From Eutreptiella sp. 'Long Island Sound 2002' (Eukaryota; Protista; Euglenida), in NCBI GenBank assembly GCA_964036045.1, contig OZ038379.1:48112001-48176000 (forward strand): a stretch of 64,000 bases of DNA. The letters are read 5' to 3'. A program made the position numbers and the translations under genes. The notes under the pieces are model-generated. The model saw only the letters and a program-made list of their open reading frames with translations. It did no database searches and had not been told where the DNA came from. Positions 25,576-56,933 of this stretch are shown here, one piece after another (positions within the stretch are counted from its first letter, which is position 1; every line of letters starts with the position of its first letter).

Positions 25576-25624
<49 letters not shown>

Positions 25625-25811: not shown

Positions 25812-27282
25812 CCAGGGTTGCTGTTTGGGCCTGCAGCCCTCCTATAGCCCTCCTTCAGGTCAAAATCTTTTCTTGTTGTTTTGACACAAATACGAATTCT
25901 CTACAAAATTTTGAGTATTTTGAGTATGAATAAAAATTTTGGCGCCTTCGGCGCCAGACGGTTTTCTCTAGGGACACTTGTTGATGGCCGCCCCGGCACC
26001 ACTATCTTTCAAAACCCGGGGGGGGGGGGTGCCGCATACAAGGACCGGGCCCGGCCGCCCCCCCGGGGTAGCAGGGCCACCGGCCAGGGGGAAGTGCTGA
26101 CCTCCCATGCCGGTGGGCGTAGTTGATGGGCTATTGCTGCTGCTCTACTTGATGGGGCTCGGCGGGTAGCAGGGGCCTGCATTGGACCGGAGGCTCGGAA
26201 GCAAGAGGGAGCAAAGTGCGGGCGGAGGGGCTATATGTAGAAAGCGAAGGGGACACTGCTTCTCTAGGGGTCGCTAGCGAATTTCAAAAGCCCAAGGGGT
26301 TGGTACTAGGAGGTGTGCCGGCTGCTATTGGGAGGAAGGTGGAGGGGGGGGGGGGGGGCATGGTGAAGCTCCTTCGGCTGGCGTCTTTGGGGGTGGCTAG
26401 TTGGCTAACGGGGCCCAGAATACTCGTGCTAGGGGGCATCGGGATCCCTAAGGCAGGTGCTTTGCGGTGGGGTGCCCGCTCCCCCAACATTTTTGGTAGA
26501 CTACCCAAAGAGGGGTCCGGGGGCCCTATCACTTAGGCGTCACAAGTTGCCCACCCCCCACCTGGCGCTATGGCCCACGGAAGTCCATGTTGTAGTGAGG
26601 GGAAAAGTATGTGAAAAGGGGTGTTATTTTTTGGGTATCCAAACCCCCCTGGTGGCAACATGCAAAAACAAGGTGTGTATTTCAAATATATGCCATTATT
26701 TGCATTTCTGGAAACACACAGATTTTCAAAATAAAGACATTCAATCACCAAAATATAGTGTTGTTTTACATTTAGACCACTGCATTCCAGTGCGGGGGGG
26801 GGGGGGGGCTGCCTATTTTTTCTCTCCCCTCTGTTCGAGGGTGATCAGAAACCCCCCTATACATCACAGATAAGGGAACCCCAAACATACCTTTCATCGA
26901 AGGACACAGAAAACTATCCCCAAAGCATGTACTTCTATTTCCTATTTTAACCAACCTGGCCGAAATTTCGGCCAGCTCTTTGAAAAATGTCCAAACACAT
27001 GGTCCTATTTGGCAGGCAGGCCTAAGCTGGCCGAAATTTCGGCCAGATCCATCGAAACTCCGAACATGATCACTGAAATGGCTACGTATGACAGTAGACA
27101 TGAGCAAGGAACACAGGAGCAGTGACATTTGCACAGGGTGTGCAACATAATATACTCAATTACAAGCAAATACTTGCCACGTGACGAATCAAATCGGACT
27201 TTTGCAGTGCCTATGGGGAAACACAATAATAAGAGGCTGAAGAGGCTGAGGACTGCATGCTGGCCGAAATTTCGGTCGGACT

Positions 27283-29893
27283 TCATATTGACACGCAATA
27301 TAAGCAGTAGGACTGGCTTTGGCGGTTGCGCAGACCATATGCACGGAGCTTCTTAGCACCTGTGTTAGCAGGAGGCTTGGCAGGGGCTGCAGCACCAGGC
27401 TTGGCACTAGCAGAGTTCTGTGACTGTGTGTTTCCACCCTGGGATGGTGAAAAATGATTCACAAAAGCATCCATACCTCTGCCAGTAGGGGCCACAGTGC
27501 CTGAGGAGGAAGCTGGGGTGGCCTGAGCGCACTGTGTGCCACTAGGTGAGGGGGCAGGGGCAGTTTTGGGTTTCTTCTTTGGAGTGTGTGTCTCTGGTTG
27601 CGACTGCGCCTCCCCATCTTGCTCCTCGGGATCCTCATCTACATACCTAACCCCAGAACAATCCACAGGAAAACCTGTCCCCAAGTCATGGTACACATCC
27701 TCCCATGACTTGGGGGGGGCACGTGTCGGCGTTGGTGATAGCCGCTCTGATGGATTGGACAAACTCATCAAGCACAACAGTCTCCTCGCGCAAAAGGGCA
27801 CACACAACATTACAGTCCTTGGAAAACCTGGTAGACATCATGGTTGCAAAATACACAGACAGAGTCCCCAGCAGAAACCAATTGCCAGCCCGTTCTGGGA
27901 CCGGAACCGGGCTCAAAAGAAACGAGAATATCTCAACAGGCATCACAGACGACATGGGTCCTTCAGTAAAAGCCACGTAACGGGGCATCCTGTTATCAAA
28001 GGCGGTGGCAGAATAAACGGAAACCAGATGGGAAGTCGAAGTATACAAAGGGGTCTTGGTTGACAAATTGTAAATTGCGACATCACACTGATACATATCC
28101 TCAGCCACAGTGGCCTTCAAAGCAGCAACAATGGCTTTCACATCAGCAGACTCACCCGCAATGAACACAGGCACACCGGACAGAAGCAGCTGCGCAACCA
28201 GGTTATGCAAACCAGCTGTATAGAGGCAGGGCACCTCAATGACACAAGCAGCAAAGGGCAGTGAACTAATGATACTGGGAACAGGGACTCCACAACGCAT
28301 TGTCATCAGTTCCACACGGCTTGACTCTGCAATGAGTTTGCCTGTGCTTGTCTCAACGAGGGACTCCCTAGCACACTGGATACTAACCAGACCAGTATCA
28401 GATTTTTCACAAACAGGCTTAGCAACAGGCTTCTGCAACAATCCCCGCAAACCCTCATATTTGGGTTCCTTCCAAATAGGGGCCTTAATTACTGCTGGTG
28501 GCCAGGGGTTTTCTTCAGTCCAAGTCCAGCTGCCATAGGCTACCTTCAGATGTGATGCGATAGCGCACTGCCATCTCGATAGTACCAAGTGTAGCTGCTA
28601 ACAGGTGGTATCACAGGGTGGGCTCCTATTGTGCATTAATTGAACGACACACAAGCTGGCCGAAATTTCGGCCAGGTCGGTCGATTTATTCGAATACAAA
28701 CCCCTGTTTGACCAAAACATACCTCTGGTGTTGTTCACAAACCCATTGGCAACCGCCTCGGGATGAAGAATGTGCCAGGACCAAATCTGGGCCTTTTTAA
28801 CATCTTTTATAGTTTTTTTGAGACTAGGTAGGGTACTTTTTGTCCCATCCATGTAACCTACGATGTCGCGAAGTCGGTCAGGCGTGATGCCTTCCACTTC
28901 CTTGAACGTACCCAGTGCGGGATGTAATCCACGCTTCTCCATGGCTGCCATGGCGTCTACTGCAGCAAGACCCACAAATTTCACCAAACGCCCAACGCCA
29001 CCTCACCGTTTGGCAACAACAGTCTGCACAGGATAACATGTGGAACACAGAAGCTAGCGGAAATTTCGGCCAGGTCGATCGGCAGAACCGAATTAATAAA
29101 CGAAACACACCACAGTGCCTTCCTCGGCAGTAACACCACACTCTTCAAGCATAACAGTAATGTGATGGCAAAGGGTGTACTCATTGGCACCCTCATCCTC
29201 AAGCCTATCCAGGAGTAGGGACATTCGCTCCGATGTGGTGGATGCTGAGCCAGCAGTGGTCTGGATTTGATGTAAGTCTGCAAGCCGGCGCCTAGTCCGC
29301 AGGGGGCAGTCCTGCTTGACTTCATAACCACCAAATACCAGGGTCCAAAGCGGAGTCTCCATATTTTTCATCTCAAATTCCGTCTTGTGTTTTTGGGCAG
29401 CAGTGTAAACATGCTGACCCCCCAACAGAACCCAGCGAGTGGCTGCGCAACAGGAACATTCGAAACAGCAGGGTCGAAAATTGAGGCACAAAAACGGTAC
29501 TATCGAGAAGAATACCACAACACACATACGAGTGACTTTATAAAAAAAGAGATCCTGGATGTAATCCACAAGCGGGGCTGCCTTCAGATCGTCGTAGCGG
29601 CGTTGCACGCGATCATCCGATATCCTACGGACCTGCCCAAATTTTCAGTCGTGGTCAATAATAATCTGGTCCCAGCGAACCTTTATTTTCGTCGTTGACG
29701 TAACCCAGTCGGATAACTTGATGAAGGATGTTGAATTTTTCTTTGGTGCGGCCTTAGGCTTCTTTTGAAGTCCCTCTGTCCTCGCCTGGTCCTCTTGAGA
29801 CTGGGATTGCACTTGAGCTTGCCCATTGTCTGCCGCAGGCTCACCATCTTGCGAAACAGCCACGTCTTGTGATACCTCTCCAGGCTCAGTCAT
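27283..29893 (-). pseudogene. Four-exon accessory gene of unknown function inside the transposon
   Basis: ATG at 29893. GT-AG introns at 29529-29443, 29110-29024 and 28722-28598 each preserve frame. In-frame TGA at 29645-29647 and 29003-29005, plus frameshifts in the last exon. Confidence 0.7.
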
Positions 29894-30269
29894 AAAATAA
29901 GATGCTACACGGCAACATTTCATGAAGGGGAGAGTTCCCAAATAGCAAATAACAAGCACAGATCAACCAAAAAAGGACCAAAACGGACTGCCTGACAGGA
30001 AAATCGGATAACCTGGCCGAAATTTCGGCCAGCACTGCTCTGCATGTTAAACCACTGTGCAGAAATACCATTCTGAGGGGCTGGTCAAAATTTCGGCCAG
30101 AACCGTATGTCATTTGTGTTCCGGGGGTAGCCATATGACCAAACAACGAGTCTGGCTGAAATTTCAGCCAAAAAAACATGAAACAGCAAATAGACACACC
30201 AAAATCACTGGGAATGCGTGGCAGAACCCATACCACAGTGACAAACACAGCTGCAAACAGAAATCAGTC

Positions 30270-32465
30270 CTAGTCCTGGGTATCCACACCGATGTGTTCT
30301 GCCTCATCTAGGGCTTCAAAGGAGGCAACGCTGTCTGCATCGCAATCAATATCCCGGTCACTATCACAAGAGTCGATGGCAATGGAATCATCAGGGGCGG
30401 GGGGGGGGGGTACTGGGCGGGGGGGGCTGGGGGGGGTACTGGGGGGGGCTCTGGCTCGGGGCTTCGGGGGTGGCTTTGGGGGCAAGGCAATCCCACCAGG
30501 AGCAGCACCAGGAGCAGCAGGCGGTGCACGGTTGGCAGCGCGGATAGAAGCATGTGCAGTACGCAATACCCCTTGCTGGGCAGCAGTGCGAGCGGGTGCA
30601 TTTGTCTGTAAAAAATCCTCAACACCCTCAGGAACCCTGTTAAGCGCAACCAGATTTTGCATTGCATGCAACAAACCACTTTTAACCGGTCTGTGGTGAT
30701 TCGTGTCCTAGACATTGTACCGGGGAAAGTCAGATCCTCAACTGCATCCAGTCTTCTCACCTCAACTTTATAGTCCGGAACGGGAACACATATGGGCAGG
30801 CTCTGTGTATGGGCTGTCAAAATGAATTGTTTAAGATTGGCAGAGAACATTGCCACGGATCTCTCAGTCAGCACACCACGCAAAACTTTCTCTCCCGGTT
30901 CGACAGGGGGAAGTGTCAGAAACAAAGCAGACGACTGTTGGACCCTGGTACAGGCAGTGTTGCGGCGACAGTGGGCTGAGAACCGACTCAGAAGTGCCTC
31001 ACCCAGCTCCTCACCCTAGGGAGGCGGAATGCCACTGACTCCAAAACAAAAGAGCAACAGCAGTGGTTTTCACATACTCCGTGGCTAACTGCTCCTCGGG
31101 CTTTAGCATGTCCAGCATGAGCAGTAGGGACATCTCAAGTGCCTGCTTAGCAACGATCCGGGAACCTGCCCCCCGGCCCTACCAGTTGCACTCACGAACC
31201 AAAGTCCCAATGCTGAAAGCAGCTGGACAGTATGTGTACAGCAAAGCCTTAAGGGCTAATAACATACGCAAACCCTTGCGCTGAATGGGTGTCAAGTCCC
31301 GCTGGCTACTGAGCAAGCCTGTTACGCGCTCATCTAGTCTGCCTCTATTGGACGATGTGGCTAGCATGAGTCCAAGCAACGTCTTCTCCATATGGATGAC
31401 CTTGACCTTGCGAGGGAGGATAGACCCAACTTGAAGGCTATTCCCCTGCTCCAAAAACTTAATGAACGGCAGGAACGCCCTGTAGATCAATTCAACGCAG
31501 TACTTATAGCTATGCCGTACTCCGCACACCAAAGGAAAACCCAACAGTAGTTGTGGTACATTCCACGGAACATAAGCGGCACCATAACACAGCTTAAGTA
31601 GGGCAATGTGTATTTTCATGTCCACAAGCAGCGGAACAGAGTGTCTGGTGCGGTGTTCCACACATGACAAATCAACCACGAGTTGCAAAAGCTCTTTGTG
31701 TGTGCCGGAGCGGAGCTCAGACAGGAAAAAGGGTCTCCAGTTGAGGGAACAAACATTTTTTCTGGCAATATCTAAAGGAGCACGAACCCAAACTCTCTGA
31801 ATCCCTTGGTTGGCAACATCAATACGATCAAACAATGCTCTATGTGAGCGATAGATGTCATCTGCAACCTTTGGTACCCTGGCCTCAATTTCGGCCAGCT
31901 CCGGCAGACCCCGGTATGCAGGTAGGGCAGTAGTGTGCCAAACAGCAACAGTTGTACAGTTTAGGGTTAAGTCGGGTGAATGGGGATCAGCTCCCGACCT
32001 GTAACGCCTCAGGTTATCAAACCATATACAAACTTGCCTACGGTGCATGGTGTTCCACAAGTTGTGTGCTGCTAGTCCAGCACGATGGTGAATGGACTCC
32101 TGTTTGGTGTTACACTGACTGAGGACTCCTACCTTACGGCGTTGGCGGCAGGACATAATACCCCAGTTGTAACCAGACCCACTGTTAGAGTATGGGAGGG
32201 CCATACAACACAGCAGGCAGTATAGGGCATGGAACTGTGACAAAAATGTCATGTACCATCGTGGGGGCTTCTTCTCAGTGGCGGCAGGCTTCAATTGTGT
32301 CATGGAGTGCCGGCTCCTGCGATTCTTCCGCAACATGAGGCAGAATTGCAAAAGCTTTTGCAGAGTCCCACCACGTAATGCATTTCGCAGCAGCCCTTTG
32401 GCTGTAGTAGCAAAAGCACCAGTAACTGCAGCATGTACGACATTGACAGAAATAGCAGAAGACAT
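30270..32465 (-). pseudogene. DDE transposase, Academ/DUF6589-like
   Basis: Motifs VCIWFDNL (D1), PLLVDMKIH (D2), LVCGVRHSYK (G-x-x-H) and, after TAG 31179-31181 and a frameshift, GEELGEALLSRF (E). Pro-rich and acidic tail ends at 30270. Family call is by motif pattern only. Confidence 0.7.
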
Positions 32466-32536
32466 TAATGCTGAGACAAGAAAACAGTTATGTAGGAGTG
32501 TAAGGTGTAATACTCATGAACAATGACAATTGCAAG

Positions 32537-32837
32537 CTGACCGAAATTTCGGCCAGGTGTGTTCGAAGGGGAAATAATTGCTTAAATGTTCAAAAATAGG
32601 AAAAGCTAGCCGAAATTTCGGCCAGACCGACCAAAAACCGGAATAGAAGTGCTTGAATAGTGAACAAACCAAAAAGCTGGCCGAAATTTCGGCCAGCCCT
32701 AAGAAAAATGAAAATAACTATGCCTATTCACTAGGAAACCAAAAAGCTGGCCAAAATTTCGGCCAGAAGGGTCAAAAACTGCATATACACATAGTTGTTT
32801 GCAATGTTACCCAAAAGCTGGCCTCATTTTCGGCCAG
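32537..32837. repeat. Array of five 20-bp palindromes CTGGCCGAAATTTCGGCCAG at about 70-bp spacing
   Basis: Copies start at 32537, 32606, 32677, 32747 and 32818. Further copies at 26956, 27027, 27260, 28656, 29054, 30013, 30081, 30152 and 31879, and a degenerate copy at about 29470. Confidence 0.95.
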
Positions 32838-33379
32838 CTTCAAAAAAACGTCAAATACAACACAGTAGAAGAAGTGGATACACAAGGCTAACACATCAAC
32901 ACGCATTTCAACGGGTGTCACACAGCTCTGCCAACAACTTTGGTCACATATGTCAAATAGCATACTGAAAGTAGAAATGTAGAATATTGTCACATCACGC
33001 GTATACGGGGTCCTAGAGGGTGGGCAACTTGTGACGCCTAAGTATCATGGGACCTTCGCACCTGGCATGAGCCTGTGTCTAGAGCTGAAGAACACTCACG
33101 GTGTGGTGTGGTGTGGTGTGGCAAAGGTGCTATTACTAAAGGTCAAAAGCCGGGATGTCTCCCCACAGGTGCAAGTAAACGCAAGGGATGTATGTGTCGT
33201 GCGCGCGATGTGTGCAAGTGTGTTTAGGGGCGGAGAGGAGGAAAAGGGAGACCTAGAGGCGCGCCACCAGGCTAACGTAGTTAGCACGGGAGCTGCCGCA
33301 AGACTCCCTCCCTCCCCCCTTGCTGGTGCAAGCCTAACTCTTGCAAAACCAACGCCATAGTGCTGTTTGGGCCTGGCCA

Positions 33380-36300
33380 GGCCTTCGGCAACGTGGCGCG
33401 CATCTTGGCGTGGTCGTACGAAACAAGGATGGACTCCTAGTTCACGTGGCGCACAAACTCAGTCCCCAACGTATCGGGCCCAAGCAGTCCATGTGGGTCT
33501 GCTTCATGGGGGAGGTTTGCAATGCACACGCCCACTACTCCAAAACCAACGGCTCCCACGTCTAGGTGCGCACATGCGCAGCCCGGCGCCCCACATGACG
33601 GTGTAGCCACGCCGCAAGCCTCTCTCGGGCCGGCCGTCAACCTTGGAACCAGGTTCAGCAGACCCACAGGTGTGGCACCGATTCCTACTGTGTTCCACAC
33701 ACACGGCACATTGTGTTCAGCACCGTGGTATGGTGGGACGACCTATGTGCCAAGACAGTGATTGTTGGGACGTTGGCCATGCGGTGCACCAATGCGTGGC
33801 ACGGCTAATCCGTGTCGAAATGGTCTAGAGGGAGACCCCCCCCTCGGCACGTAATAAGCCCCGCAATGGAATTCATATCCGAGACGCACTAGAACGGAGG
33901 CGTGCTACTGCACCCGGTCATGCAGCACTGTGGAGGAGAGCCGGCACTCGTCCCGGTAGACCATTTGGGGGGGGGGGGGTTAGGAGCCAGGTTAAGTGCA
34001 CCTAGGGCGGAACCTGTTGCTGGTTGCTAGCGCTAACGGTTGGTCGCTAGCGCTGGGGGGTGGTGGAACCAAATCCCACGTTCGGCTTTGGGACCCTGCA
34101 CTTTGGGGTGGGAGGGGGGCGTCGGTAACCAAGCCATGTGGCGCAATTAATGCTAGTTCTCCGTGGAGCTGTGGGAGATGTGTCTTGAGGGCCGGGTGGA
34201 GTTAAGGCGGCAGTGTACCCACTGTACGCAATGAGTATTACAGGGGCCCTTTGCACGGGTGTCCTGGGCACAGGTGCGCCACACACACAGTGCACATGCA
34301 CAGTCGGCGGTGCAACTACAATCCAGGGCCACGGCGGCACCGAAGTAGTCACCATGACCAGGGTGGTGGGCGACGTACACATTCACTGCCAGTGGGCCTC
34401 CGCCGGCAGCCTTGACAGTCACACGACAGTGGCGCATGCACCGCTCTGAACTAGAGGTGTTCCGCTTATACGTGATGGTGGCCTGCCCAGAGCCATGCGT
34501 GCAGCAGCGTACTCACTTGCGCCTGTACCCACCGCAATGCCACAAGGAGGCGCAGCAGCAAGGTATCGCTGGGTATGGTGTCCGGGGGCTACCAACGCAC
34601 CCGCACTTCCGCCGCCAGGCATGGTCTCCTTCATAGCGGTGGACACCTTGAAGACATGTTCTTTGAGATAGACAGTCTCCTCCCTGCTGCTCTTGGCAAT
34701 GTGTCCTTTGACAACCGCCTCCGCCTGGCACTCCAACACGGCGCCGGGGATCCATTGCTTGGGGGCAGCGTGCCACCTCAGCAGGGGCACGCACAAAAGA
34801 GGGAGCAACATGCACCGTGGCGGGCAAGCCAAATGCGGAGGCTAGGGATTCCTTTGCAAGCCGGTGCCCACTACTTCAACCTCCTGTCCCCGACGATTTT
34901 GTGGTCCGGGGGGTACAGATCCCCCCACAGTGATACCCCAAAGCTTGCACCGTTTCATACACTTTGGGGGGCACAAGCACCTGTGTGACATCCCCATATG
35001 GGGTGGGGTATACCTCCAGCTGGGGGGATGGGGTCGCCGGCGGCCCCGCCCGGGGCCGCCTCATGCCCAACACCAACATGAAGGTGGTGTCTGAGCATTG
35101 GCCTGGCATCCACATCGGCAGGGACACGTCATCCACACCCGCTATAACGTCCGGGCGAGGTATGACACCACACATGGTGGGTGTAGTGCCCCGGGGTAAG
35201 CACTGCCGGGCGGCCCCCTCAAAGCGCCTGATGAGTGCACAAAGTGTAGGTTTGAAACATGCGGAACCCTTCCTTGGCACTCGCACCCTGCCAGACGCAC
35301 TCGCTAGACCACGGCAACTTGCCAGGAGTGGCAAGAACGTATGAGGCCCTAGAAATCGTGCTCCCAAGGTCCCCACGGGGCGTCCGTGTTGGCATGGCAG
35401 GTGCCCGTCATGTGCTTGCATCCCGTGAACATAGGGACGTCATTGGCCGCATGTCCTTTGGCCGTAGGGCGATGAACGATGGCCAGGGGGAGCACCTCGC
35501 TGGAGAGTTTTCCATGAGCACCATCATGGCGGCGTCCTAAGACAACCATTGGGGGCGTAGCTGCTTCCAAACGACTGCCCGAACCTCGGGCAAGTTACGG
35601 GTGGCTGTGGGCGTGCCTTGGAGGTAGATGTCGGTCCCCATGTATGTAAGGACTTGAGAGGGCGGGATTTGTCAGGCACTGGCCTGCGCCTCATCCCGCG
35701 CCACTGAGCTATTTGTCACCGGCGTATGGCATGCATGCCGGGCCACGGCCACCGGCAAGGGCCAGCGTAGCAGCTCGGCGACCGCCATAGACCCATGCTG
35801 GATGATGCGGTCTAGGACGTCCACGGACATGATCCCTTGGTAGTGTGTTCACTAATCCAGCAAACCCTCTTGCATGGGGCCGGCATCACCGCGCTTCAGA
35901 ATGGAGACAGTGTCATCCGGCCACATGAGCCCCGGGAAGCGAAAGAGCACCACCGGAAAGGCGCGGTAGGCGATATCCATGACTTTGAGAAAAAGGGAGG
36001 GTTGCCGTGGCACCGGCATGGACTCCCAAGATCGTCCCAAGGGGGGTACCCACGAGGTGTGCCACGAAATCCGGTTGCCAAGGGCCTAGTGGCAGGGTAT
36101 AGAAGAGGCCCTCCCGGTGGGTGGCTACGTGGCCTTCGTCGGCTAGGCCCACGCGGGCCCACACAATCGGGTGGACAGTCTGGGCCATGGCGTCAAAAAA
36201 CTTGGCGAGGTAAATAACTAAGATGACCACCAACCGGCGCTCGAGCTTGGCCGGGTCCAATTTGATGTGCAGGGTGCGCACTATCTCTAGGAGGAACACA

Positions 36301-37553
36301 CCCCTCATACCCCCCACGAGGAAGTGGCCCCCGAGAGCCCGCTCGTATATTGGCGTGGCGAGGGCATAGAAGGTCGTAGGCTCCAGCTTGGAGATGTGAC
36401 GGGAGATGGTGATGCCCCGGAAATACCCTTCTTGGACCGGTTGGTCAAGATTCGGGTGGAGCCGTGTAACTCGGCTGTGCTGGCCCACATCGCGACACAT
36501 AAGGGGGCTTCGCATAACAACACACAGTGGGTGCTAGTCGTCCTCTGTGAGGTGGCGGTACAAGGTGATATCCATACAAACATCCGCCTTAGGGGGGTGG
36601 AAGTTTGGGCGCCCTGCCTTGCTCAACTGCAATTCCCACAAGTGGCGAGGCGCGACATAGCTGCTTGTGGTCAGCAAGGCGTGTCAAGGCAGGTGGAGGT
36701 TGTACTAGAAATGAGCCCGGCGCACCGGGTCGTCGCTAATGCGGTACGTCTGGCCCTAAGCACGCCTTGAGGGGCCCCCCGACGCAATCTCCTCTTGGAG
36801 TTCCGAGTTGGGCTCCGGCGCCTAGGCGGACGCCCAGGTATCACGCAAGTATTTCCCAAGGATGCCAAAGACGGAGATTAGGAGGCGTTACCCGCCATCC
36901 GGTCACCTGCCGTGCTGGCGGCGGGGGGGGGGGGGGTCCGACCCCAACAGGCATGGCTCAAAATGATCCCCACATCGCGCTGATCATTTTGACTACACAT
37001 ATGTGGGCATGAAAAAAAACGTGACAAAAAACTATCCGGGGCAAAATTTGTGTTGCGGCGCCTTTGGTGGCAACATCCGTCCTTCCACAAAACAAAGGGC
37101 CCGGCACGGAAGCCCATATCTGGAGCCCCCCCTCCTTCGCCTGGCGCCCATGCCATACCCCACCCCCGCAGAGCGATTTTCGGGCCGCCTAGTGGGGCAA
37201 GTAGCTCCGATATAAACTCCGGCATGGGTATGTGGCCAACAAGCCTAATTCCCCGTTCCAAAACTGTAGGGTCCAAACCTAACAACGGCGTAACCGGCGA
37301 GGTGGAATCCCTGAGGAGACAGGACCAAATATATCCCCCTAGGGCATTCACAGCGCTAAGCTGGAACTCATCTACCTGTACCACATCAAACGCCACTTTG
37401 CCCCCCCTCATCGGGAGGAATCGGATCCTACTACACAGCAAAGACCTTAAATTCGGGTGTAGGTGTAATGCTTCAGAAATCTCATCAAGCCAGCCCCGGC
37501 CCGTGTCAGACTCGAGCAATTCCTCCACCGCTCGCGTCCTTGAGAGATTCTGA
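33380..37553 (-). mobile_element. Decayed LINE-like element with RT and RNase H
   Basis: RT 35852-36515: YFRGITISRHISKLE, YLAKFFDAM, GTPLGTILG, LMWPDDT. RNase H-like 34400-34640: GGGSAGALV...GTGASEYAAARMAL. Frameshifted ORFs continue upstream to about 41300, not resolved. Confidence 0.7.
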
Positions 37554-42680: not shown

Positions 42681-43857
42681 CCGTGGTCCGACGGGACAAG
42701 TCCCCCCCCCCACACGGTGTCCCGCACACCTGAGCACCACCCAGGCCCGGTGGAAGAGGCCGACTTCTGAGCCTCCGTGCTCCAACGGCGCGACATCAAC
42801 CCCCTCATTGCCCCGGTCCGCTGGTTGAAGTGGCTTCAGTGAGCTATTTATGATTGGGCCGCCACTACGGGTTGCATCGGGACCCTCAACTTCCCGCACG
42901 CCCGGCTGCGGTCCCGCCCAGCGGAGCGGGCCTCCTGTACACCGCCATTTGGTTGTTCGTCGCTGGCCATACGCTGCTTTGGCACCTGTCGAGCTGCTGC
43001 CCCCGCAGGGTGGTCGTCAGACGGGTTGTCTAGGCACTAAGCCCTTGGGTCTCTATTGTATTGGCCACTGTGATGTGCGCCATGCGCCGGCGGGCTGTGT
43101 ATCTCGCTGGCCTGCACATCTTGTCTTTCGCCCCCGGTGTCGACGACACGATTGATGGTGCAGTCACCTTGGTGTCTTATGCACACCTGCCGGTGTCAAT
43201 CGCGCATGCACTGCTCGCCGGCGCGGCCCCGGACGGCGGCTTTGCCGTCATTACCACCTGCCCGTCGCCTACCAGTCTGATATATGTGCTGGGGTGGGAC
43301 GTGCGATGGTGCTTGGCATTGCACGACCCCAAGTTGTGGGCCACCCTGGGCTCTTACGTTCTACGCCCGCCCCAGAGCAACTGATCTCTGAGTAGACCCC
43401 ATTTGGGCTCTGAGCCCCTCGAAATGCACAGAACTAAATACCCGACAACGACGTCGCCACCGACCAGCGCCGGTCTCATGCCAGGGATACCAGGGAGGAG
43501 CACCACCCAAAGCACGGCACTCAGCACACCCCCCGGGAAGCGCTGCCACACACACCCCCACTATGGGAGGCCAGTTGGCCCCGTGTCGCCGCCAGCAACC
43601 CAACCAACCCCGAGCCCTTCACCAAGGGACCATGAGGGAAGGACCTCTAGGCACTTCCCAATATCGTAGGGCATACCGGACTACACCAGACCCCCCGTAG
43701 GGGACCCGCAGCCACCGCAACAAGGCAGAGCAGCGGGGACCAGCGGACACACACAACACAGAAAAACACAGCGCGCGCACACGCACACAGCCCTGCCTGT
43801 GTTGCTATGCTCGTAAGCAAGATAACCCAGCCATTGCCATCTGGTATCAGCACCTTT

Positions 43858-43965
43858 GGCACACCACACCACACCACACCACACCACACCACACCACAAC
43901 ACAGCCACACCACACGACACCACACCACACCATGACACAGCACGATACCACACGACACAACACAA
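43858..43965. repeat. (CACAC)n pentanucleotide microsatellite (similar at 18150-18186 and, inverted, 33100-33121)
   Basis: Directly visible. Confidence 0.9.
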
Positions 43966-46245: not shown

Positions 46246-47149
46246 ACAGTGAAACCCCCAAAGGGACAAGGGGGAGGCAGGGGGGGAGGGAGGGACAAAA
46301 AAGAACTGAGAGATAGGCACAATATGAAAGGGAGGATACTTAAAAATGGCCGCTATTGTGCCTCACATAGACATCATACCTTGACAGTTGAGAGCGGTCA
46401 CCATTGAGGACTACCGAAGTAGTGCGTACCCAAAGGGCATGCCTCCATGCACTGTGTTCCGGTTTGGATCAGGAGACGACGATGCACCCTGTCCGAGTTG
46501 TGCACGAGGTCTACAAAAGGTGTGGCATGATTTTGAATGCCATGGTTCTACTCCAAAGTGCTTGGGGGTTTCACAGACACACAAATGCACGCACGCACGC
46601 TCAGGTAAGTGTAGTTTCCCACAATGTGGGATGGTTGAAAGGGCAGGAGCTGCAGAGTATTGGCAGCACACTGTGTAAAAAGAGAAGCAGCATTAAGGAA
46701 CGTTTAGGAGTTGAACCTCACATGCATGATTGGAGCTGATTGCCTTGATTGACTTGTACACACACACACAGACACACACACATTGAGAATTGCGAAAGAC
46801 AAACAAAGCAAGAAGTTGGAAAAAATTCCTCACGAGCTGCAGACCTAAAGAAATCCACAGAGGAGTTCATGTTTTGCTTTACCATGGCCGTTACATCCGG
46901 GGGGGGGGGGGGGCGACCCCTCGGTTCTGGACGCCAACTACCCCCCCCCCCCCCCCAACTAACTGTTGGCCGGAGGCCCCTTGGGGGGGGGGGTGAGGGA
47001 GGGGCGATTGGGGGGGGGTCTAGGAGGGGCTGGGGGGGGGGGGCTCCAGGAGGGTCGCTTGGGGGGGGGGGGGTCCAGGTGCAGCGATTTGGGGTGGTGG
47101 GGTGGAGCAGATGGGGCGATTTGGGGTGTTGGGGGGGGGGAAGGGGGGT

Positions 47150-47282
47150 GCTTGGTAAAACTTAGTACCGGACGAGGTAACACTTGGTAAAATTTGGTAA
47201 AACTTAGTAGAAACGAGGTAAAACTTGGTAAAAATTGTTTAAAATTTTTTTCTAAATTTATATTTACTAAGTTTTACCTTGG
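47150..47282. repeat. Cluster of GGTAAAAC(T)T repeats with an inverted copy, probable transposon end
   Basis: CTTGGTAAAA-type repeats occur about five times in 47151-47235, and TACTAAGTTTTACC inverted at about 47265-47278. Confidence 0.5.
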
Positions 47283-47556
47283 TCTACTATGCCCCCCCCC
47301 CCCCCGGCTGCCGTTTTAAACAACGTAGTCAATACTTCGATGGTAGGTGGTACTTTTGTTTGAGGGCACAAGGCCCCCGCGCCGATTCTCGGCCACTTGT
47401 GTTAGTGGCACCCCACCCAGGCCAAACCATCATGCACACCAATTAGTTGGCACTCGGCCAACATAACAAAATATAATTGGGGTCGGGCACTAGAAACAAA
47501 ATCAGGCTCAAGAAAAGAGTCCTAACGGGCCCATGGCCAACATCTGTGCCAACTAC

Positions 47557-50540
47557 TTACAAGTAGTTACAAAAGACACTCTTGAAAATCAAGTCGGCCT
47601 TGGTATCTGCTCGGCGCGGTTTGCCTCGCACTGTGGGATTATTGGTGCACATCCCAAACAGGGCCGTTTTGAACTCCCCTTGCAGCTGAGTGCAAAATGC
47701 TTGGCCATTTCTCACTTGACCATCAGCATTTTGGGAATATTGAGGAGGCACTGCATACCACTTGTGACATATCCACACACCACAACAGGTGTTAGCAGCA
47801 GAAGCAGCAACAACAGCAGAAGCAATAGCAACAGCAGCAATGTTGGCCGTCCAGAATTGGCGCAACTCAACACAGATCTCCGATTGACACAAGATGGACG
47901 CATGCAAGGCACAATGAAGAACCTTACATTTGTGGCACGCGATGCGAGGTGTGCCATCACAAGAAAAGCATGTGTCAACGGGGTCCACAGATTTGGGTTC
48001 GGGTAACATCCGAGCCACCTCCCAGTGTACTGCCGGGGTCTTAAGGGTGGAGGCCGGCTTTGAACGACTGAAGTACAAAGTAGCCCTAGCCATGTCACGC
48101 AACAACCACAATCGACCTAGTCGCACTTGCAATATGCCCTTGACAACGCGCCGAGATAAGGCACGAAGCAATGTCAAGAGACATGCCGGATGGCAACTGA
48201 CACCATCAATCTGCTGGATGAAGGTGGAATACCGGGGTGCAATTGCAAATGCAAGGGCACCAAAAGCATCCGAAATCTTTGACCACTTCTTCCGCTGCTA
48301 TGATTCAACGCCTTCTCACTCGGCAATCCACAACAAAAAACTCCTCCTGGTTTGCCCCATCAATGTGTGGCCGGCCACACATTGGGTCAAATTTAAGGCC
48401 AAGGTATTCGCGAGTTGGGGCAATGGGCAACAAGCGGAGCACCCAATGCCAATTGCTCAAATTATACACCTGCGCCACAATCAGGGGTGGTGCGAAAGGC
48501 ATATCTATGGACGACGCTTCCAAAATGCGCTCTGCCCACGATCCAACCAACTGTTTTCGGCATTGTGCACTGGTACATGAGGCATTCCACAAAGAATCGC
48601 GGACAACCCGCGCCACACCCATTCTATCCCAATCCGCACCGAGAGCGGTTTGGGCAGCCCATCAGTAATACACCACAATTTGAGCACAATCTGTCACATA
48701 GCTCTCGTTGGTGAGGTCCCTGAAATGGCGTGCCTTAAACTCAAATTGTTGCGGCGACAAACCTGGAACCGTGACATGTAGTGGCGGCCTCCAATCATTG
48801 CCAAGCATTGCCTCTACCTCTGACAAGGATGGGCGAAACGAGCCTTGGCTATCACTCAATGCTTTGCAAACATCAGCCTGTTGTTGCTCAACATATATTA
48901 ACCGTGCGGTCTCCAAGAAGCGGTTTGTCGTGAAAACAATTGCCATAGAGGTGGTGAGGCAATAATCCAATAAAATCACCGCATCAAGAGAGTCACTACT
49001 TGTTGGCGACACATTTAGCAGCGTAGTCAACTCCTCCATTGTCATGTTCATGCCCCCACCATAGTTTTTTCGACAAGCCCCTTGCAAATGCCAACGTATT
49101 TTCTCCGTGAGGCAGTGGCGGGTATAAGCAGTGCACAACTGCTTCTCCGTCTGTAGTGTATCACTGATTTCCATGGGGTTTTTTCGGTGTTCAAAATACT
49201 CTGTTTGAATGATTTCCCGAACACCCCCGAGCAAGTCGGCCCCTCGCACCTTGAACTCCGTACGATGGGAACAATCGTTGGTATGTGGTATGACAACATC
49301 CACGTACCACTGCCCCTGAGAAGCAACATCTCCGCGGACTTTTGCAAGGGCTGGGCATGGGCCGCAAGGTCCCTTGAGGAGGCACCCGGTACAGCACATG
49401 GCATGCTGAAGTGACTCTCCGTATGCCTAAACTTGAAACCTTTATCGCGATAGTTGTGAATAGCCTCCTTAATAGTCTAAAACATCTCAATTTCGTTGTC
49501 TCAATCATCCACTGTGTCCCCTTCATCCTCTCCCACTTCGTCCTGGCCCTCTCCCTTGTCATGTGCCTTTGACGCTTAGCGGACAGGCCTGGTAAGACAG
49601 AGGGGGTTCGTTGGTCCACTTGGTGGGTTCCACATAACTCCTTGCACCATGGTGCACTTTTCAGAGTTGTCGGGATCATCAGCAACAGAATCTTTGCACC
49701 ACATGCCATAACAAGTTCCTCCAATTCCTCATTCAATACGGGATGGTGACATAGGCAATATGTCTCGAAGAGCTTCCATTTCACCGAAAGCGAACTCCCC
49801 GGAGAAAAGACAAATTGGTTGTCAAACCATGTGAGGAACCGCTGGAATGTGCCCTTCTCGCCTCTTCACTTTGCATCAGACTCACCGTCCTTCCAACGCC
49901 CACCACTAACAACCCGTGTGTGTGTCACCTTACCATCCGGTGTGCTTCGGGGCAGGAGTTCCAACTCCAAACCCTTACTCTTAAAAAACCGGGTTACTGC
50001 TTGCTCATCCACATTTGCCACTAGGGCCATAGCGGTGTGCACAGCAGTAGAACCTGGAAAAACATCATCTTAGTTGCCAGTCACCTAAATGTTTGCACTG
50101 AACCACTGCGAAAGGGTGGGTGCCGCATCAACACCTTCTTCCGGCGCCGATTGCGCACTCAACGGTTCTAACGATGCCGTGCGATATCACACTTTGAATG
50201 TGCAAGTTTCTAACTTGCTAGTGGCCTTGCAATATTTTGTGTCCGGACATGCTCCTTGCTGCTTAAGGAAAGCACTAATCTTGTTACGACCGACATGAGG
50301 CACCCCATTGCGGATGCGTTCCAGCAATGATTTTGACCAAACTAAATGTGTGTCATGAGGTGTGAACTCCAAGTGGGTGGCAACCCACTTTGCAAGTGTA
50401 AGTGGTGCTGAATTTTGTGACATGTGGTGAGACGTGATGGTATGCCGTAAAGCCCACCGAACAGACTGAGAGTTGAAAAAAGACACTCTTCTGGGACACC
50501 CACAAGCTCTATTGGTTTTTGCAACTGTCACATGCAAAAG
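47557..50540 (-). mobile_element. Decayed Mutator-like (MULE) transposase region
   Basis: CPALAKV...WYVDVVIPHTNDCSH (WRKY/FAR1-like Zn finger), LWCITDGLPK (catalytic D-like), CFSCDG...CHKCKVLHCALH (SWIM/PHD-like). Multiple frameshifts. Ends not found. Confidence 0.5.
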
Positions 50541-51695
50541 GGCATGTTACCCTGGTGTATATATAGACTTTGTGAATGGTATTTTGCTTAGCCCACGTTA
50601 CAAGGAGGTTGGACATCGCAACTCCACACTATGAGGAGCCCCGGGCGTCCCTAGCCATCAGTTTTTTCTTTTTCCCCCTCTCCGGCTGGAATATTGAAAT
50701 TGCAAACACAATTAATGGTTGGAGACGGAGGCAAGTGCGTGCGTATGGCCATAGCAACTTGAGGCGGTGGCCTTGGACCACACAGCGCCAGTCTACAAGC
50801 ACCTGTGCCCGCTTACACCACACATACAACAAACAAGCTTAACCTCCGTACCGGCATTGTTGCCTTGCAATGGACACACATTAGCCACCGCTCAGCCAAA
50901 AAAAGTGTTTTGTTGTGTTACCGCGTGGCGGGTGGTGCGGCCTCTCACTCGGACCCAAAATTTGTGTCGTTGGAAAAATCGCCACCCATACCCCCCCCCC
51001 CCTTGGGGGTATGACACGGGGGGCGGCCACTATAGGGATAGGGCCGCCCCCCAACTAGCAAGGCACATGGGGTAGCTCAACTGCCATTCCATCCCCTACA
51101 TGAACAACGGCGGTAATATAGCAAACATTGCAAGACAAAATAGAAACCGAATCGAGAGGTGTTGGGGGGGCCCATGCACGTTCACAAAGAGAACAAAAGA
51201 AGACAACATACAACGTTCAATGAAGGGAAGAACGCCAAGCCCGAGGTTCATTATGGTCCTCAAAATTTCCTATGATCATCACAAACATGAATGTCATAGG
51301 ATGTTTATAAAGGGAATGATGCAATGCATTTTGACTGTGAGTCCCCCACATGAACCGCACCTTGGCATGTGTCTGCGACTCTTTACCCATGAGTGATGAG
51401 TAAGCTCCTGCATCACCTGAGGGGTAGAGGTTCACAAACATCAAGGAAAAGTACAATGCATGCGTGTTCCAAGGGTACCATCCGTGCACGCAGAACTGAT
51501 TGTGGCCGGTTTCTTGGTGCATACCTCGGTGCCATCTGCAGAGCTTTGCTTGGAGGACACCGTTGCAAACACGAAGGGCAAAAGAAAAAAAGGGGGGGCA
51601 CCAAATCAGAAATCGCCCACAAGTGGACCCAATGGCTACATAACCCCTGCCGACTCCATGGGATCCCAACACATCGCCTACCATGAATTGACAGC

Positions 51696-51899
51696 CCCTA
51701 ACCCCAACTCAAGCGGCCGCGCAACAAAGCGTGCATTGCGAGTCCCTAACCCCAACTCCAGGGGCCACACAACAAAGCGTGCATTGCGAGTCCATAGCCC
51801 CAAATCCAGGGGCCACGCAACAAAGCGTGCATTGTGAGTTCCTAACCCTAACTCAAGGGGCCACGCAACAACATGGATTGTGAGTCCCTAACCCCAACT
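51696..51899 (+). repeat. 48-bp tandem repeat with a telomere-like CCCTAACCCCAAC core, continuing at 56757-56820
   Basis: Units start at about 51696, 51744, 51792, 51840 and 51886. The array resumes mid-unit (TCAAGCGGCC) right after the transposon. Confidence 0.85.
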
Positions 51900-52022
51900 C
51901 CCTTGGTACCTGTATGAAAAGTAGTATTGTTCATAATTCATATTTCATATATGAACGGTTCATATATGAACCATGAATCATGAACAGCTTTTATGAACGC
52001 TTCTTTGTCCACAGATTTTGTT

Positions 52023-53928
52023 ATGTCTTACCCTCCCTCCCTCTTGACGGAGCTGAACATGATGCTTGTTCGGCTCAGTGGTGCCACCAGTCTTCGGGAC
52101 AGCAAGTGTTCCGACCTGTTGGCACAATGGATGTCATCGTCGCCCCTCATACGGGCCCGTTTCACGGAGGCAATGGACCACGCTCCCCTCCCGGCGGTCC
52201 ACAAAACCAAGGTGCAGGCCATCCGTACGTATGCGAGGCCCTCTTTCCCGCACCCTATCTGATAGGGCTCCTTTTGGAGTTGGGTGCACCCCGCTCCGGC
52301 TTCCGGGTGTTGTCTAAGTACACCACCCGCCGGGGCAGCGCCTACACCGCCCGCACAGGACTGCCCTTCCCACAGCCCATCCCCACACGGGACCAATTTG
52401 ACGCAACGTGGAAGTCATTGACCGCCCCGCTTGCGTTGTCCCCCCCCGGTGGAATGTGCTGACCCCCCATCGTCACGTCGCTGCTGGCCCCTGCGGTCCT
52501 GGGCACAATACGTGCAATCCCGGCCGGCACTGTGCCAGTCTATTGACTGGACCCGCCCCCTCACCTTTGTGGTGCGGGGTGACGGGTATCCTTGCGTCGG
52601 TGGCAGTTGGTCGCAGCCATCGGTGGGGCCATTGAACCATGGGCTAAAGGCGCGCACACCCGCCTTCCTATGGGTCATCGGCATGGCCGTCACGGGGGAC
52701 AAGGATATAGTTGCCGTAGGCCAAATTTGGGCTCAGGTGCTACAGGTTTGTAGTTTGCATTTTCGTGATAACAAGTTGTTCATAATTCGCGCGTTCATAA
52801 TTCGAGAACCGCCGTCATAAAACGCCGTGCTGCCCATTTATGAATTCTGGACGCATTTTATGAACACCAATTATGAACACCTTTTATGAACACAGGTCCT
52901 GCAGTCCATCATTGACTGCAAAAAAATTTACTGGTGCAACAGCTGGGTGCCGGCAACGGTCCTCCTTGGTGGGGACCAGCCGTGGCTCCGGCGGCTGCTG
53001 GGCATTAGCGTGGCTCCCCAAGTGGGAAGCATTTTCAACGAGGCTGTGCGTGGCAACACGGCCAAGCAGTGGAATGGCATCGCGACTTGGAGGACAACGC
53101 GGTCAAATGCAAACAATCATCGTCGCTATCTGATGACCCGCACCCTTTGCACTGTTGCATGGCCTTTGGGAGGCTCTTCGTGGCCTTTGTGGAGGCCCAG
53201 GTGGGAAATCATCCCCCTGAGGTTGCAGGGGAGGTGCAGAAAAATTTTGTACTGCAACCGGTGTGGCGTGCGTTTGGGGGCGCACAACGCATCGGACGGT
53301 GAGGAGGCCCACAACCTGTTTTGGGCCTAGGAGCGGATTGCGCCGCTGCTTGCATACGTCCAGGAGGACCCCACGTGGCAAGCGGTTGTGGGGCTGCGAA
53401 CATTGCTGCGCACTTTGTACTCGCCGATTCCGGTTGTGCCGCGCCCTTCGTGCCGACCTATTGCTGCTGCGTTTCGGGAACATTGCTGCGGGGAGTCGGG
53501 GTCGCACTATTTGCGGTTCCTCGAAGAGGACTGTGATACCATGCTCGAGAGTGCGGATGCATGTGGGGTGGGATTGGCTGCTGTGTCAGGGGACGTTTTG
53601 GAGAGTGTAAATTACATTTTGAAGAAGGGTTACAACGGGCATACTGCTAGGGGTGGGGGTGCGGGTAAGAGTGCAGTGGAACGGGAAGCAATGGTCGTCC
53701 AACCGGTTTGGGAATGGTGGTTTCTAACCTTTGACCTGCCGTTGCTGCACTACAACACCCCACACACCGCGGCGTGCACCGCCTCTTCACTTCTGAGCAC
53801 TACCCCCCAAGCACCCACCACCCACGCACCCTCTGCGACCCAGCTCTCTTATTCTTTGCCCATCCATGGACGCCGCCGAGATGAGGAAGCTGCTGGAGGA
53901 GAGCCAGAGGGCGACGCTGGCCCTGGTA
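52023..53928 (+). pseudogene. DDE transposase with RAG1/Transib-like motif order
   Basis: FVVRGDG, LLGGDQPWLRRLLG, PLHCCMAF, DGEEAHNLF, SHYLRFL, GLAAVSGDVLESVNYILKK. Phase-0 intron 52746-52895. Frameshifts, and TAG at 53328-53330. Confidence 0.7.
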
Positions 53929-54740
53929 GTATGCTGTCTGTCGCGTTCATATTGCTTTCATAATTCGGCGTTCATAAAACCGACACTGCCATCATAAATG
54001 AATTATGAACCGATTTATGAACTCATGAATTATGAACCACTTTTATGAACGAATTATGAACCGTGTCCCCCATGTCCACAAGAGCAGCCACTGGCAGCCT
54101 ATGCTCTTCCGCCTCCTCCGCATCCTCAAGCTCCACTTCCACCTCCACCTCCAGCTCAAGCTCCTCCGCCTCCTCAAGCCCACCCCCAACCCCACGCCGC
54201 TCAGCCCGTCTCCGCCTCCCAACCCGCCGCTGACTCCTCGAGTGAGGAGTCAACAGACTTCTCGGAGTAGGAGAGGAAGAGGAGGAAGAAGGAGAAGAAG
54301 AAAGAGGACAAGACGAGGAAGAAGGAGAAGAAGAGGGAGGAGAAGAAGAAGAAGGAGGAGGCAGCGGGGGGGGGGGGGGGTGAAGGAGGAGGAGGCCACG
54401 GAGGACATCGAGGAGGTGAAGGCCGAGGTCGAGGACGTGGCAATGGAGGGGGAGGGGGCAGGGGGGGAGGGGTTGGTTGCCACCCCCTGGTAGCGGGGGG
54501 AGGCAGGCCATGCCTGGGGCCTCAGCCAGGCCAACCAGTGCCTGGTGCTGACCCTCCCCTGGGCGCAAGGGACGCTGGACAGCGGGTACTCCCCCGATGC
54601 CCCCCTTTTTTCGAGCCCTAAGGTGACTTACGTCACCCTGCGCTGGGCATTCCGGCGCATGTTGCGGCACCGCATCCGCAACAAGGGGGAGGGGGGGGCC
54701 TGGCGGTACGGGGGGGGGGGGGGCATGGGCATGGAAGCCC

Positions 54741-56360
54741 TTGGCGGGAAAGCCCCTGTCCCCCATCCCTGAACCAATTGAGCCTGAGGATTTGACGCTT
54801 GCCAAAGTTTTTTCGGGGCCGGGGGGGCGCTTGATGCGGAGCTCCCATTGGGAGCTGTTGTTCCTCCACTGGGAGGAACGGGGATGGGTGAAGCTGCAGC
54901 GCTCCGGGCGCAAGTTGGAGTGCATCCCCCAATGGGAATCCATTTTGGGGGGGGTGTATGACCCGGGGCAGGAGGCCTGGTACGAGGGAGCCGTGGAGGG
55001 CCTCACCATCACCCGCCCCATCAAGCCCCTTGCCCGGGCAGCCCCGGCCACCAGCAGCACCACAGACCCCACAGCCGCCCCCCTGGGCGCCCCTCCCAGC
55101 GCAGCGGCGAACGTGCGGACCGCCCTGGGCGCCATGGGGACCATCGGACCAGAGCCGGTTTTCGAGGTATGTGCGTTCATAATTCGTTCATAATTCGCTC
55201 ATAATTCCGCGTCCATAATTCAGCGACCCTGCACTGCCTGTTTATGAACCATGAACGCGATTTATGGACGCGTTTTATGAACGCATTTATGAATGGCACT
55301 GTCACAGGTCGTGGACGTGGAAGTGAACCCGGCGGACGTCGCGGGGGTCCGCATCCGGTACAAGTTGGGGACCGCGGACTTCAGCATCGCCCTGTCCCCC
55401 CTGTATCAGCTGCTGCTGCTCAACCGCCAGCGGGGGTGTGCCATCCTGTCCGGGCTGCGGGAGTGGGGGCGCTCCCGCCGCTTGACGGACACGTGGGCGG
55501 CCAACACCCCGTGCTAGGCGGCACTGGGGGCGTTGGGGTGGGAGGGGTGTTCGGATGAGGACATCCTGATGTCCAGTTGTGGGATGAACCGGCCAACCCC
55601 GGCCCGCCCCCACAGCGCCTCCCTAGCAAAGCCCGCCCCCGCCGAGAAACCCAAACCCCGTGCCGTGGCCCCCCCCAAACCCAGGCAACCCAAGAAGACC
55701 CCCCCGCCAAAGCGCAAATCCTTCGAATCGGGTAGCAGCTCGTCGTCTGACCAGGCACTCCCCTATCCCCATGCAAAGGGGAAGGGGAAACAGCCGCAGC
55801 AGCAAAAGCAGCGCGAGGAGCCCCCTTCTTTGGAGGGGCATGAGTCACTTGACCCCATGCTAGGTAAGCAGGTGTATGTGCCCTACACCGATGGTGTCTA
55901 CCCGGGGGTTGTAACCTCGGTTGTGGCGGGGGCGGGGGGGAGAGTGTGGGTGGAACACCCGGGGGAAAAGGAGATGTTTCGGGTTGAGAGGCATGTGTTG
56001 TATGCATCTCATGCTGCAGCAGTGACCCATTGGGAGAACCAAAAGGCTGCAGCTGCACGTAAGAAGGCCGCCAAGGCCAAAAAGAAGCCTAACCCCAAAT
56101 CAGACGCTGACCCACCGGCTGAGCCGGCCCCCAAGCCCTCCAAACCTGAACCCAAGTCTGAGGCTAAGCAGGCCCCTCAGCCCGAGCCCAAAGCTGCCCC
56201 TCAGGCCGCCCCCATGGAGGAGGATGCCCCAGCGCACCCCTCGGCCAAACCCGCAGCCCAACCACCCGTCCAAACCCATGCCCAGGCCCCGGATGGAGGC
56301 GAAACCCAGGCCACGGCCCCCCTTTGGGGGGACCCGACGGGCCCCAGCCCTGAGGTGTAG
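54741..56360 (+). pseudogene. Second ORF or C-terminal extension with a Tudor/PWWP-like domain
   Basis: Exons ...55166 and 55308-56360 join in frame across a GT-AG intron (55167-55307). One in-frame TAG at 55515-55517. The segment LGKQVYVPYTDGVYPGVVTSV...RVWVEHPGEKEMFRVERHVLY is at 55857-56003. Confidence 0.55.
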
Positions 56361-56933
56361 GGCGGCATGAACCAGCAAGGACAAGCAAGGACAAGCAAGT
56401 ACAAGAAAGATTGAAGCCTGAGCGATTTTTGTGTGCCTGTGCGGCTGTTCATAAAATGCGTTCATAAAACGCGTTCATAAAACGCTCTGCGCGTTCATAA
56501 AACGAGAACTGAATTATGAACCGAATTATGAACAGGGGAGGAGGTTTTCATAATTTTCAAAAACTGGCAAAAATGGAAATTTTTGCCAAAAAACCCTCGG
56601 CGGACAAAAAAAAAAACTCACCCCAAGGGTGGTGACCCAGGCCCCCCAATTTTGAACGAACATGGCCCATGGGTACCCTAGCAAGAGCGAAATCCGTTCA
56701 TATTTCATAAAACCATTTATGATGAACAAAACTACCTTTCATACAGGAGCCAAGGGTCAAGCGGCCACGAACAAAGCGTGGATTGCGAGTCCCTAACCCC
56801 TACGCAAGGGGCCACACAACCCCTGTTTGTCCTTGCGCCGTCTTTCCGCAAACAGTGGATCACTTCTGCAATGTTTTACGGCTTTGTCAAAAATTTATTT
56901 GTGTGTGTATCTTTTATTTGAAGTTCCGCCAAG

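Follow-up and report, generated by a model that had tools for sequence, protein, structure and literature searches.

The question raised by this locus is why a DNA transposon would carry one private palindrome not just near its ends but in its spacer, its introns and even its transposase frame, and what would read it there. The locus is a stretch of 64,000 nucleotides from Eutreptiella sp. 'Long Island Sound 2002' (contig OZ038379.1, positions 48,112,001 to 48,176,000 of the forward strand; hereafter the window), in which two transposons, element A and element B, each hold many copies of a motif of their own. An earlier interpretation made from the letters alone (the sequence-only reading) had suggested that the two are unrelated, that each places its motif in essentially all of its noncoding parts and carries coding sequence beyond the transposase, and that motif and accessory protein work together as in the VANDAL/VANC system of Arabidopsis. 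Both elements were compared with their homologues. The close ones all came from one ENA assembly (ERZ25074135), and four distant relatives of A (L006, L007, L011 and L012, at ~25–31% transposase identity) lay on contigs from unrelated metagenomes. The window and the fetched loci, ~170 kb in all, were scanned for both motifs. We found that each of the six lineages examined in A's family has its own palindrome, and we tentatively propose that an element-encoded protein reads it.

Element A is a two-gene cut-and-paste transposon, complete but defective (Table 1); the window copy of B is defective too. The inverted ends of A begin CTTAGGCG, the termini starting CTTAGGC, and its true start at 26532 lies one base beyond the 26531 given by the sequence-only reading. 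A second copy in the same assembly (L001, 7424–13958; 94% identity to the window copy) has its own target-site duplication, ATATG, and the corresponding duplications in the two copies of a diverged subfamily, A', are ATTGA and TCCAA, so that a perfect 5-bp duplication was present in four of four family-A copies (two A and two A').

Fourteen copies of a 20-bp palindrome, CTGGCCGAAATTTCGGCCAG, were found in A when up to three mismatches were allowed, all of them within the element, and none in 100 shuffles. L001 is the less decayed copy: 12 of its 14 palindromes are perfect, including five at the equivalent places upstream of gene 1. In both copies the arrays lie 70–370 bp upstream of gene 1 and 90–250 bp upstream of gene 2. 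Introns of the window elements were inferred from conserved blocks, frames and GT..AG bounds, and two of the gaps so defined in gene 2 hold one palindrome each. The motif is therefore enriched in ends, spacers and introns, as had been claimed, but not in all noncoding parts, since an A intron at ~29441–29535 is free of it and one copy lies in coding sequence. Outside family A the A-type search gave no match in the ~170 kb; it also picks up variants inside the two A' elements.

In all six family-A lineages, which share ~25–46% transposase identity, a private 18–22 bp palindrome recurs several times within the element (8–14 copies in the five lineages other than A'). In every lineage the inverted ends and the palindrome are unrelated sequences. 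The change from A to A', within one genome, is a symmetric double change from C5:G16 to G5:C16: positions 5 and 16 are C and G in 28/28 and 27/28 A copies and in 0/15 A' copies, with no mixing among the 43. This turnover of the motif under a conserved layout, together with the unmixed A and A' variants, points to a reader that the element, and not the host, encodes. Divergence of the motif with the element lineage was seen for A against A', L006, L007, L011 and L012, and for B against a subfamily, B'.

Neighboring palindromes are 67–71 bp apart in A, A' and L006 despite dissimilar spacers, a spacing absent from L007, L011 and L012. Motif-bearing introns are only partly co-positioned between lineages. 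At one and the same position of the transposase there is a degenerate in-frame copy in A (peptide LAEIEA) and a perfect copy of its own palindrome in L007 (LRAQARN), with none in A' or L006. The shared position could reflect independent gains or an old site kept current. L007 has three further in-frame palindromes in what would be a loop of the insertion domain.

Gene 1 of A we take to encode the transposase. In the window copy two frameshifts and an in-frame stop, which follows residue 428, disrupt the gene; its 428-aa frame is a truncated copy of a ~740-aa protein represented by P0001 (722 aa), of which there are 267 near-identical members. Among 1.84 billion representative proteins a profile search returned 1,111 relatives (E <= 0.001), mostly on short metagenome or transcript-like contigs, none of them named or with a Pfam domain, and a Pfam scan of 44 transposase homologues showed nothing above noise. 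The AlphaFold model based on the alignment of these 44 had a predicted local distance difference test score (pLDDT) of 88 and a predicted template modeling score (pTM) of 0.83. Its top 16 structural matches in the PDB (Foldseek) were all DDE transposases that carry a helical insertion domain, namely those of Hermes, the P element and ISCth4, though with weak support (E 5e-3 to 3e-2, ~10% identity); Transib/RAG matches appeared only at ranks 37–39 (E ~0.6). D150, D232, D282, W317, H318 and E360 are invariant in the 44 homologues, and E489, E490 and E493 nearly so. Inverted ends with a target-site duplication in independent copies, a modeled RNase H-like fold and conserved acidic residues are all as in cut-and-paste DDE transposons.

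We cannot assign A to a described superfamily. Like Hermes and the P element (PDB 4d1q, 6dww, 6p5a), its transposase is predicted to have a helical insertion domain that splits the RNase H-like core, and this fold is nearest hAT and P. However, the duplication is 5 bp and not 8, and the 44 homologues gave no match to a hAT or P Pfam family, the hAT C-terminal dimerisation domain included, which speaks against hAT membership. A 5-bp duplication fits Transib, but the CTTAGGC termini are not of the CAC type.

Five lineages have gene 2 after the transposase: A, A', L006, L007 and L011, the last judged by eye. The coding blocks of gene 2 share 37–56% identity between A and A' and are recognizable, weakly, in the distant L006 and L007 (tblastn E 2e-9 and 7e-9). 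Exons were searched singly, and the only spliced protein used was a natural database protein, P0359, from a 1,034-bp JGI contig (L010). Three blocks of this contig match L006 at 99–100% identity, and exactly 175 nt (GT..AG, two palindromes) and 80 nt (no palindrome) are missing from it relative to L006. The exact loss of these segments indicates that L010 is RNA-derived, and so that gene 2 is expressed and spliced and that the palindromes of the L006 lineage lie in a genuine intron. Gene 2 gave no match in PDB sequence or profile searches or against plasmids (tblastn), and Pfam scans of every sizeable frame of A, A', L006 and L007 stayed at noise level. By eye the N-terminus of gene 2 recalls ParB/Srx domains (GQxR ... 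GGQH..AA), a likeness with no counterpart in the Pfam, PDB and plasmid searches and for which the structural model of this part was too poor to use.

Element B has the ends CCCTTGGTACCTGTATG.. and ..CATACAGGNGCCAAGGG. Four copies show the left end and three the right end, which is missing from the locus of L008. The two flanking base pairs match in two of the three copies with both ends (TG/TG and TA/TA; CT/TC in the window), so that its duplication is probably 2 bp. Within B there are 23 exact copies of GTTCATAA, against 1.25 expected, in six clusters placed at both ends, in three GT..AG gaps that separate coding blocks and in the 3' region; outside the B family the ~170 kb held two stray matches. 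Since the intron and 3' clusters run forward then reverse and the 5' cluster has one copy of each orientation, these five clusters are themselves inverted repeats. The L004, L008 and L009 copies repeat the layout over the extent of each locus. B' (L005) carries a different motif, and as this locus is rearranged it was used only to show that difference.

The largest coding block of B, intact as 377 aa in L004, has 159 homologues (E <= 0.001), all in one assembly. Scans of the B and B' frames gave no Pfam match, the main block of B had no PDB match, and a DDE enzyme in B is only our reading of the sequence. Relatedness of A and B was considered and rejected (profile comparison probability 1.6%), in line with the sequence-only reading. 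By eye, a C-terminal block of B (~55860–56010) looks Tudor- or chromo-like, without Pfam support. B interrupts a 48-bp satellite (51696–51899) that resumes at 56757 (56757–56822), and the B' copy sits in a 74-bp satellite (L005, 5132–6023 and 11153–12932); this family may prefer tandem repeats or survive there.

Table 1. Positions of the features of elements A and B, with the palindromes of the other family-A lineages (window coordinates unless a locus is named)
Feature	Position	Strand	Remarks
Element A, two-gene cut-and-paste transposon, complete but defective	26532..33042	-	6,511 bp; terminal inverted repeats and target-site duplication
Target-site duplication of A, TATCA	left 26527..26531, right 33043-33047	.	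5 bp, perfect
Terminal inverted repeat of A	26532..26556, partner 33018-33042	+	25 bp, 100% complementary
Group of three palindromes in the 3' subterminal region, beyond gene 2	26956..27279	.	motif search
Gene 2 of A	27283..29923	-	several coding blocks, ~700 aa; tblastn conservation
Lone palindrome	28656..28675	.	in gap 28571-28714 separating gene-2 coding blocks; GT..AG bounds in L001
Lone palindrome	29054..29073	.	in gap 29045-29095 separating gene-2 coding blocks
Three palindromes in the spacer of genes 1 and 2	30013..30171	.	spacing 71 and 68 bp
Gene 1 of A, putative DDE-type transposase	30465..32465	-	tblastn with intact 722-aa P0001
Degenerate palindrome, in frame within the transposase	31879..31898	.	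2 mismatches; peptide LAEIEA
Five-palindrome array upstream of the gene 1 start	32537..32837	.	spacing 71, 70, 71, 69 bp
Palindromes within the transposase frame	window 31879-31898; L007 1237-1256, 1852-1938; L012 2326-2343; L011 4005-4026; L006 2893-2910		
A' palindrome, CTGGGCGAAATTTCGCCCAG			9 and 6 copies in two A' elements
L006 palindrome, TTCGCTCCATGGAGCGAA			13 copies; spacing 67-69 bp; four pairs within gene 2
L007 palindrome, TGCGCGC-N4-GCGCGCA			13 copies; complete element, 23-bp perfect ends
L011 palindrome, TGTCCGCGAA-N2-TTCGCGGACA			9 copies
L012 palindrome, TTTGTTCGCGATCGCGAACAAA			8 copies, plus a core copy in the transposase frame
Element B, second transposon, defective copy	51900..56756	+	4,857 bp; within 48-bp satellite
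B 5' cluster	51926..51999	.	inverted, one copy per orientation; hairpin z = -4.7
Putative intron 1 of B	52746..52895	+	GT..AG, 150 nt; 2 forward then 3 reverse motifs; frame continues across
Largest B coding block	52896..53925	+	here interrupted by a stop at 53328 and shortened by an internal deletion; intact 377 aa in L004
Putative intron 2 of B	53926..54082	+	1 forward, 5 reverse motifs
Further B coding blocks	54494..56360	+	conserved with B' in L005; tblastn E 4e-12, 3e-10, 6e-10
Putative intron 3 of B	55167..55307	+	GTATGT..CACAG, 141 nt; 2 forward and 2 reverse exact motifs, plus variants
B 3' cluster	56447..56533	.	4 forward then 2 reverse motifs
B right-end cluster	56695-56730	.	degenerate copies only

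We take both elements for cut-and-paste DNA transposons, and we propose, with a probability of about 0.4, that these private, two-fold symmetric sites are read as double-stranded DNA by an element-encoded dimeric protein, and that coating of the element would control its own genes in cis. The symmetry would be that of a true palindrome in A and of inverted 8-mer clusters in B. A has cis sequences of two kinds, ends and palindromes, and also two conserved proteins; it would be most economical if the transposase went with the ends and the gene-2 protein with the palindromes. Arrays beside the ends would bring in the reader so that the ends are recognized and paired, and the copies upstream of genes, in introns and in coding sequence would keep it bound along the whole element. 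Internal sites are unneeded for cutting yet are kept matched to the motif of each lineage, which favors a second role for the bound protein. The output we would favor is that the element's own genes are activated in cis or shielded from silencing, as by VANC or TnpA. Reading by a protein rather than through an RNA fold, the choice of that protein and the outcome of binding are what we infer; the sites with their privacy, symmetry and conservation between lineages, the two genes and the intronic place of some sites are what the sequences show.

Every family-A palindrome contains CpG. In L001 the observed/expected ratio of CpG is 1.14 in the motif copies versus 0.46 in the remaining non-coding DNA. 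The ratio is 0.65 for the window (GpC 0.97), 0.48–0.56 for the A and A' copies and 0.64–0.66 for L006 and L007, and CpG sites make up 62 of the 218 transitions between the two A copies, a pattern that suggests cytosine methylation in the host. The CpG depletion goes no further than making methylation-based silencing plausible in this host. A further-reaching version of our proposal, which we hold to be unlikely, would have family A as an undescribed two-gene superfamily, widespread in microbial eukaryotes, whose orphan protein reads CpG palindromes and blocks methylation silencing, an independent VANC-like invention of which B would be a second case.

VANC21 binds a 9-bp motif in the upstream regions and introns of VANDAL21, where the motif forms dense same-orientation tandem arrays (PMC5735166). 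The likeness to VANDAL21/VANC21 lies in a family-specific motif that occupies non-coding parts and is rare elsewhere, in accessory genes and in the co-divergence of motif and family. As far as the claim of an analogous motif-plus-accessory-protein system goes, a private motif was found in both elements and a second gene, conserved across lineages, in A; the extra coding sequence attributed to both comes down in B to conserved extra blocks, and the arrangement of sites is unlike that of VANDAL21. VANDAL elements are also Mutator-like with a ~9-bp duplication, as opposed to 5 bp in A and probably 2 bp in B, neither of which has a match to Mutator-like elements (MULEs). The likeness is thus one of motif distribution, and A and B do not belong to the VANDAL family. 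Pfam scans matched no A or B frame to any family, VANC-type included, no direct comparison with the VANC sequence having been made.

Several points weigh against the proposal. The sites of VANDAL21 are 9-bp motifs in same-orientation tandem arrays, whereas those of A are spaced palindromes of 18–22 bp and those of B inverted 8-mer clusters. Gene 2 showed no recognizable DNA-binding domain, and the AlphaFold model of its natural spliced N-terminus (P0359) was unusable (pLDDT 48.7). A separate accessory gene is established for A and not for B, and the distant lineages surveyed belong to family A only. Palindromes and inverted clusters predict RNA hairpins equally well, and motif-free introns are spliced too, as the 80-nt segment absent from L010 illustrates. 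Lastly, A's two single-motif introns share ~40 nt around the palindrome and L006 has two 113-nt intron modules with 79% identity, paralogous beyond the palindrome, so that duplication or gene conversion could spread and homogenize such modules without selection.

One alternative is that the sites serve the transposition machinery only, binding the transposase or its helper to assemble the paired-end complex, with no effect on chromatin. Internal copies would then be a local reservoir that biases the protein toward the element encoding it, or autoregulatory decoys that dampen activity. We regard this as possible, if somewhat doubtful. The densest and most regular arrays do adjoin the ends. Hermes and the P element, the structural neighbors of the A transposase, each encode one protein and have multiple subterminal sites, multi-site subterminal binding being standard for them. 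Surplus transposase sites in piggyBat ends reportedly restrict its activity (PMC11707139), which gives a precedent for extra sites modulating an element's own activity, at the ends only and in a one-protein element of another superfamily. Against such a purely mechanical role, the mid-element sites of this 6.5-kb transposon, like those in introns and coding sequence, are far from the cleavage points and could act as pseudo-ends, and internal sites have been kept and re-tuned in lineages at ~30% transposase identity.

The layout may instead be a by-product of repeat dynamics, in which slippage, gap repair or gene conversion copies subterminal modules into internal non-coding DNA, where they are kept uniform with the end arrays, and only the terminal sites function. 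The paralogous intron modules of A and L006 are what this account expects, as is the partial co-positioning of motif introns across lineages; the VANDAL motifs too were spread by tandem repeat formation (PMC5735166). Yet the same outcome was reached in six lineages, in-frame copies stand at an equal protein position in the transposases of two of them, 12 of 14 copies are perfect in L001, and the ~69-bp spacing is held in three lineages though the flanks differ. We therefore consider this account distinctly unlikely. That the A introns might be nested miniature copies of the same element was ruled out, because they hold no element end sequences.

The symmetry could also act in RNA, with hairpins formed by palindromes or clusters in the primary transcript aiding intron definition, export, stability or small-RNA production. 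Consistent with this, the change from A to A' preserves pairing, and hairpins are predicted for B at intron 3 (z = -4.8, spanning nearly the whole intron) and at the 5' end (z = -4.7). However, B introns 1 and 2 are near the stability of shuffled sequence (z = -1.3 and -2.1), with one exon control at -2.8, and motif-free introns are spliced. The subterminal arrays, which precede the transposase start on one side and lie beyond gene 2 on the other, need not be part of any transcript, and for Dicer-type processing a stem of 8 bp is short. We consider an RNA role improbable. A captured host transcription factor, suggested by the sites upstream of both A genes, would not separate the distinct, unmixed variants of two subfamilies in one genome, would face a different sequence in every lineage and a motif missing from ~170 kb of other DNA, and can hardly be the reader.

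Two further known systems bear on the pairing of two proteins with two kinds of site. En/Spm encodes TnpD and TnpA, and TnpA, whose 12-bp subterminal motifs lie in both orientations near both ends and are confined to the subterminal regions, also reactivates methylated elements. A resembles En/Spm in having two proteins and in using termini and a repeated motif as separate recognition sequences. It differs in lacking CACTA termini, a 3-bp duplication and any Transposase_21/24 or TnpD/TnpA match, and in having sites in introns and spacers as well. In Harbinger the transposase depends on a Myb-like partner that binds the subterminal sites and brings it to them, and we know of no internal sites described for it; A has no DDE_Tnp_4 or Myb match and a duplication of another length than PIF/Harbinger.

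To our knowledge, sequence-specific self-marking over the whole length of a transposon has been documented experimentally only for the VANDAL elements of Arabidopsis. Here the same layout is seen in two unrelated families, and in family A, a large one that lacks a Pfam model and comprises more than 1,100 representative transposase clusters, the trait is deep and conserved. The recognition specificity of family A turns over cleanly, including the one-step symmetric switch between A and A' in a single genome. The family thereby offers a testable system for private recognition codes, for the part of internal sites in regulation or anti-silencing as opposed to cutting, and for the role of the orphan second protein, and palindrome-reader pairs could serve as orthogonal DNA-binding parts.

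A 976-aa MULE-like frame beside the A' transposase in L002 was considered as part of family A and set aside. It belongs to a separate element nested in an A' copy (L002, 11847–16152), with a weak PF10551 match and its own end repeats, GCGTAAGTCGC. This sequence occurs only at the two ends of that element, an ordinary subterminal pattern and a useful contrast to A.

The 18.9 kb separating A from B is part of neither element, and no Rfam family or tRNA was detected when the window was scanned for them. Just upstream of A (25576–25805) there is a run of 62 G, then G-rich repeats of 12–47 bp and 15 units of AGGGTT, telomere-like (TTAGGG) and internal. The microsatellites (GGTGT)n at 33100–33160 and (CACAC)n at 43820–43935, in inverted arrangement, flank a 10.7-kb stretch with 60–65% GC and no recognizable domains. 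At 46927–47301 a C-run and G-rich repeats of 25–29 bp lead into an array of seven GGTAAAACTT units, one inverted copy among them (47154–47278), which may be the end of another element; the frames at 47533–49784 that adjoin this array have no Pfam match. Beyond B, an array of the 11/21-bp GGGTTGGGAGA type (58061–58524) gives way to a 149-bp satellite, which has at least 36.7 units and runs past the window end (64000), and GC skew is strongly positive in this region (58061–64000).

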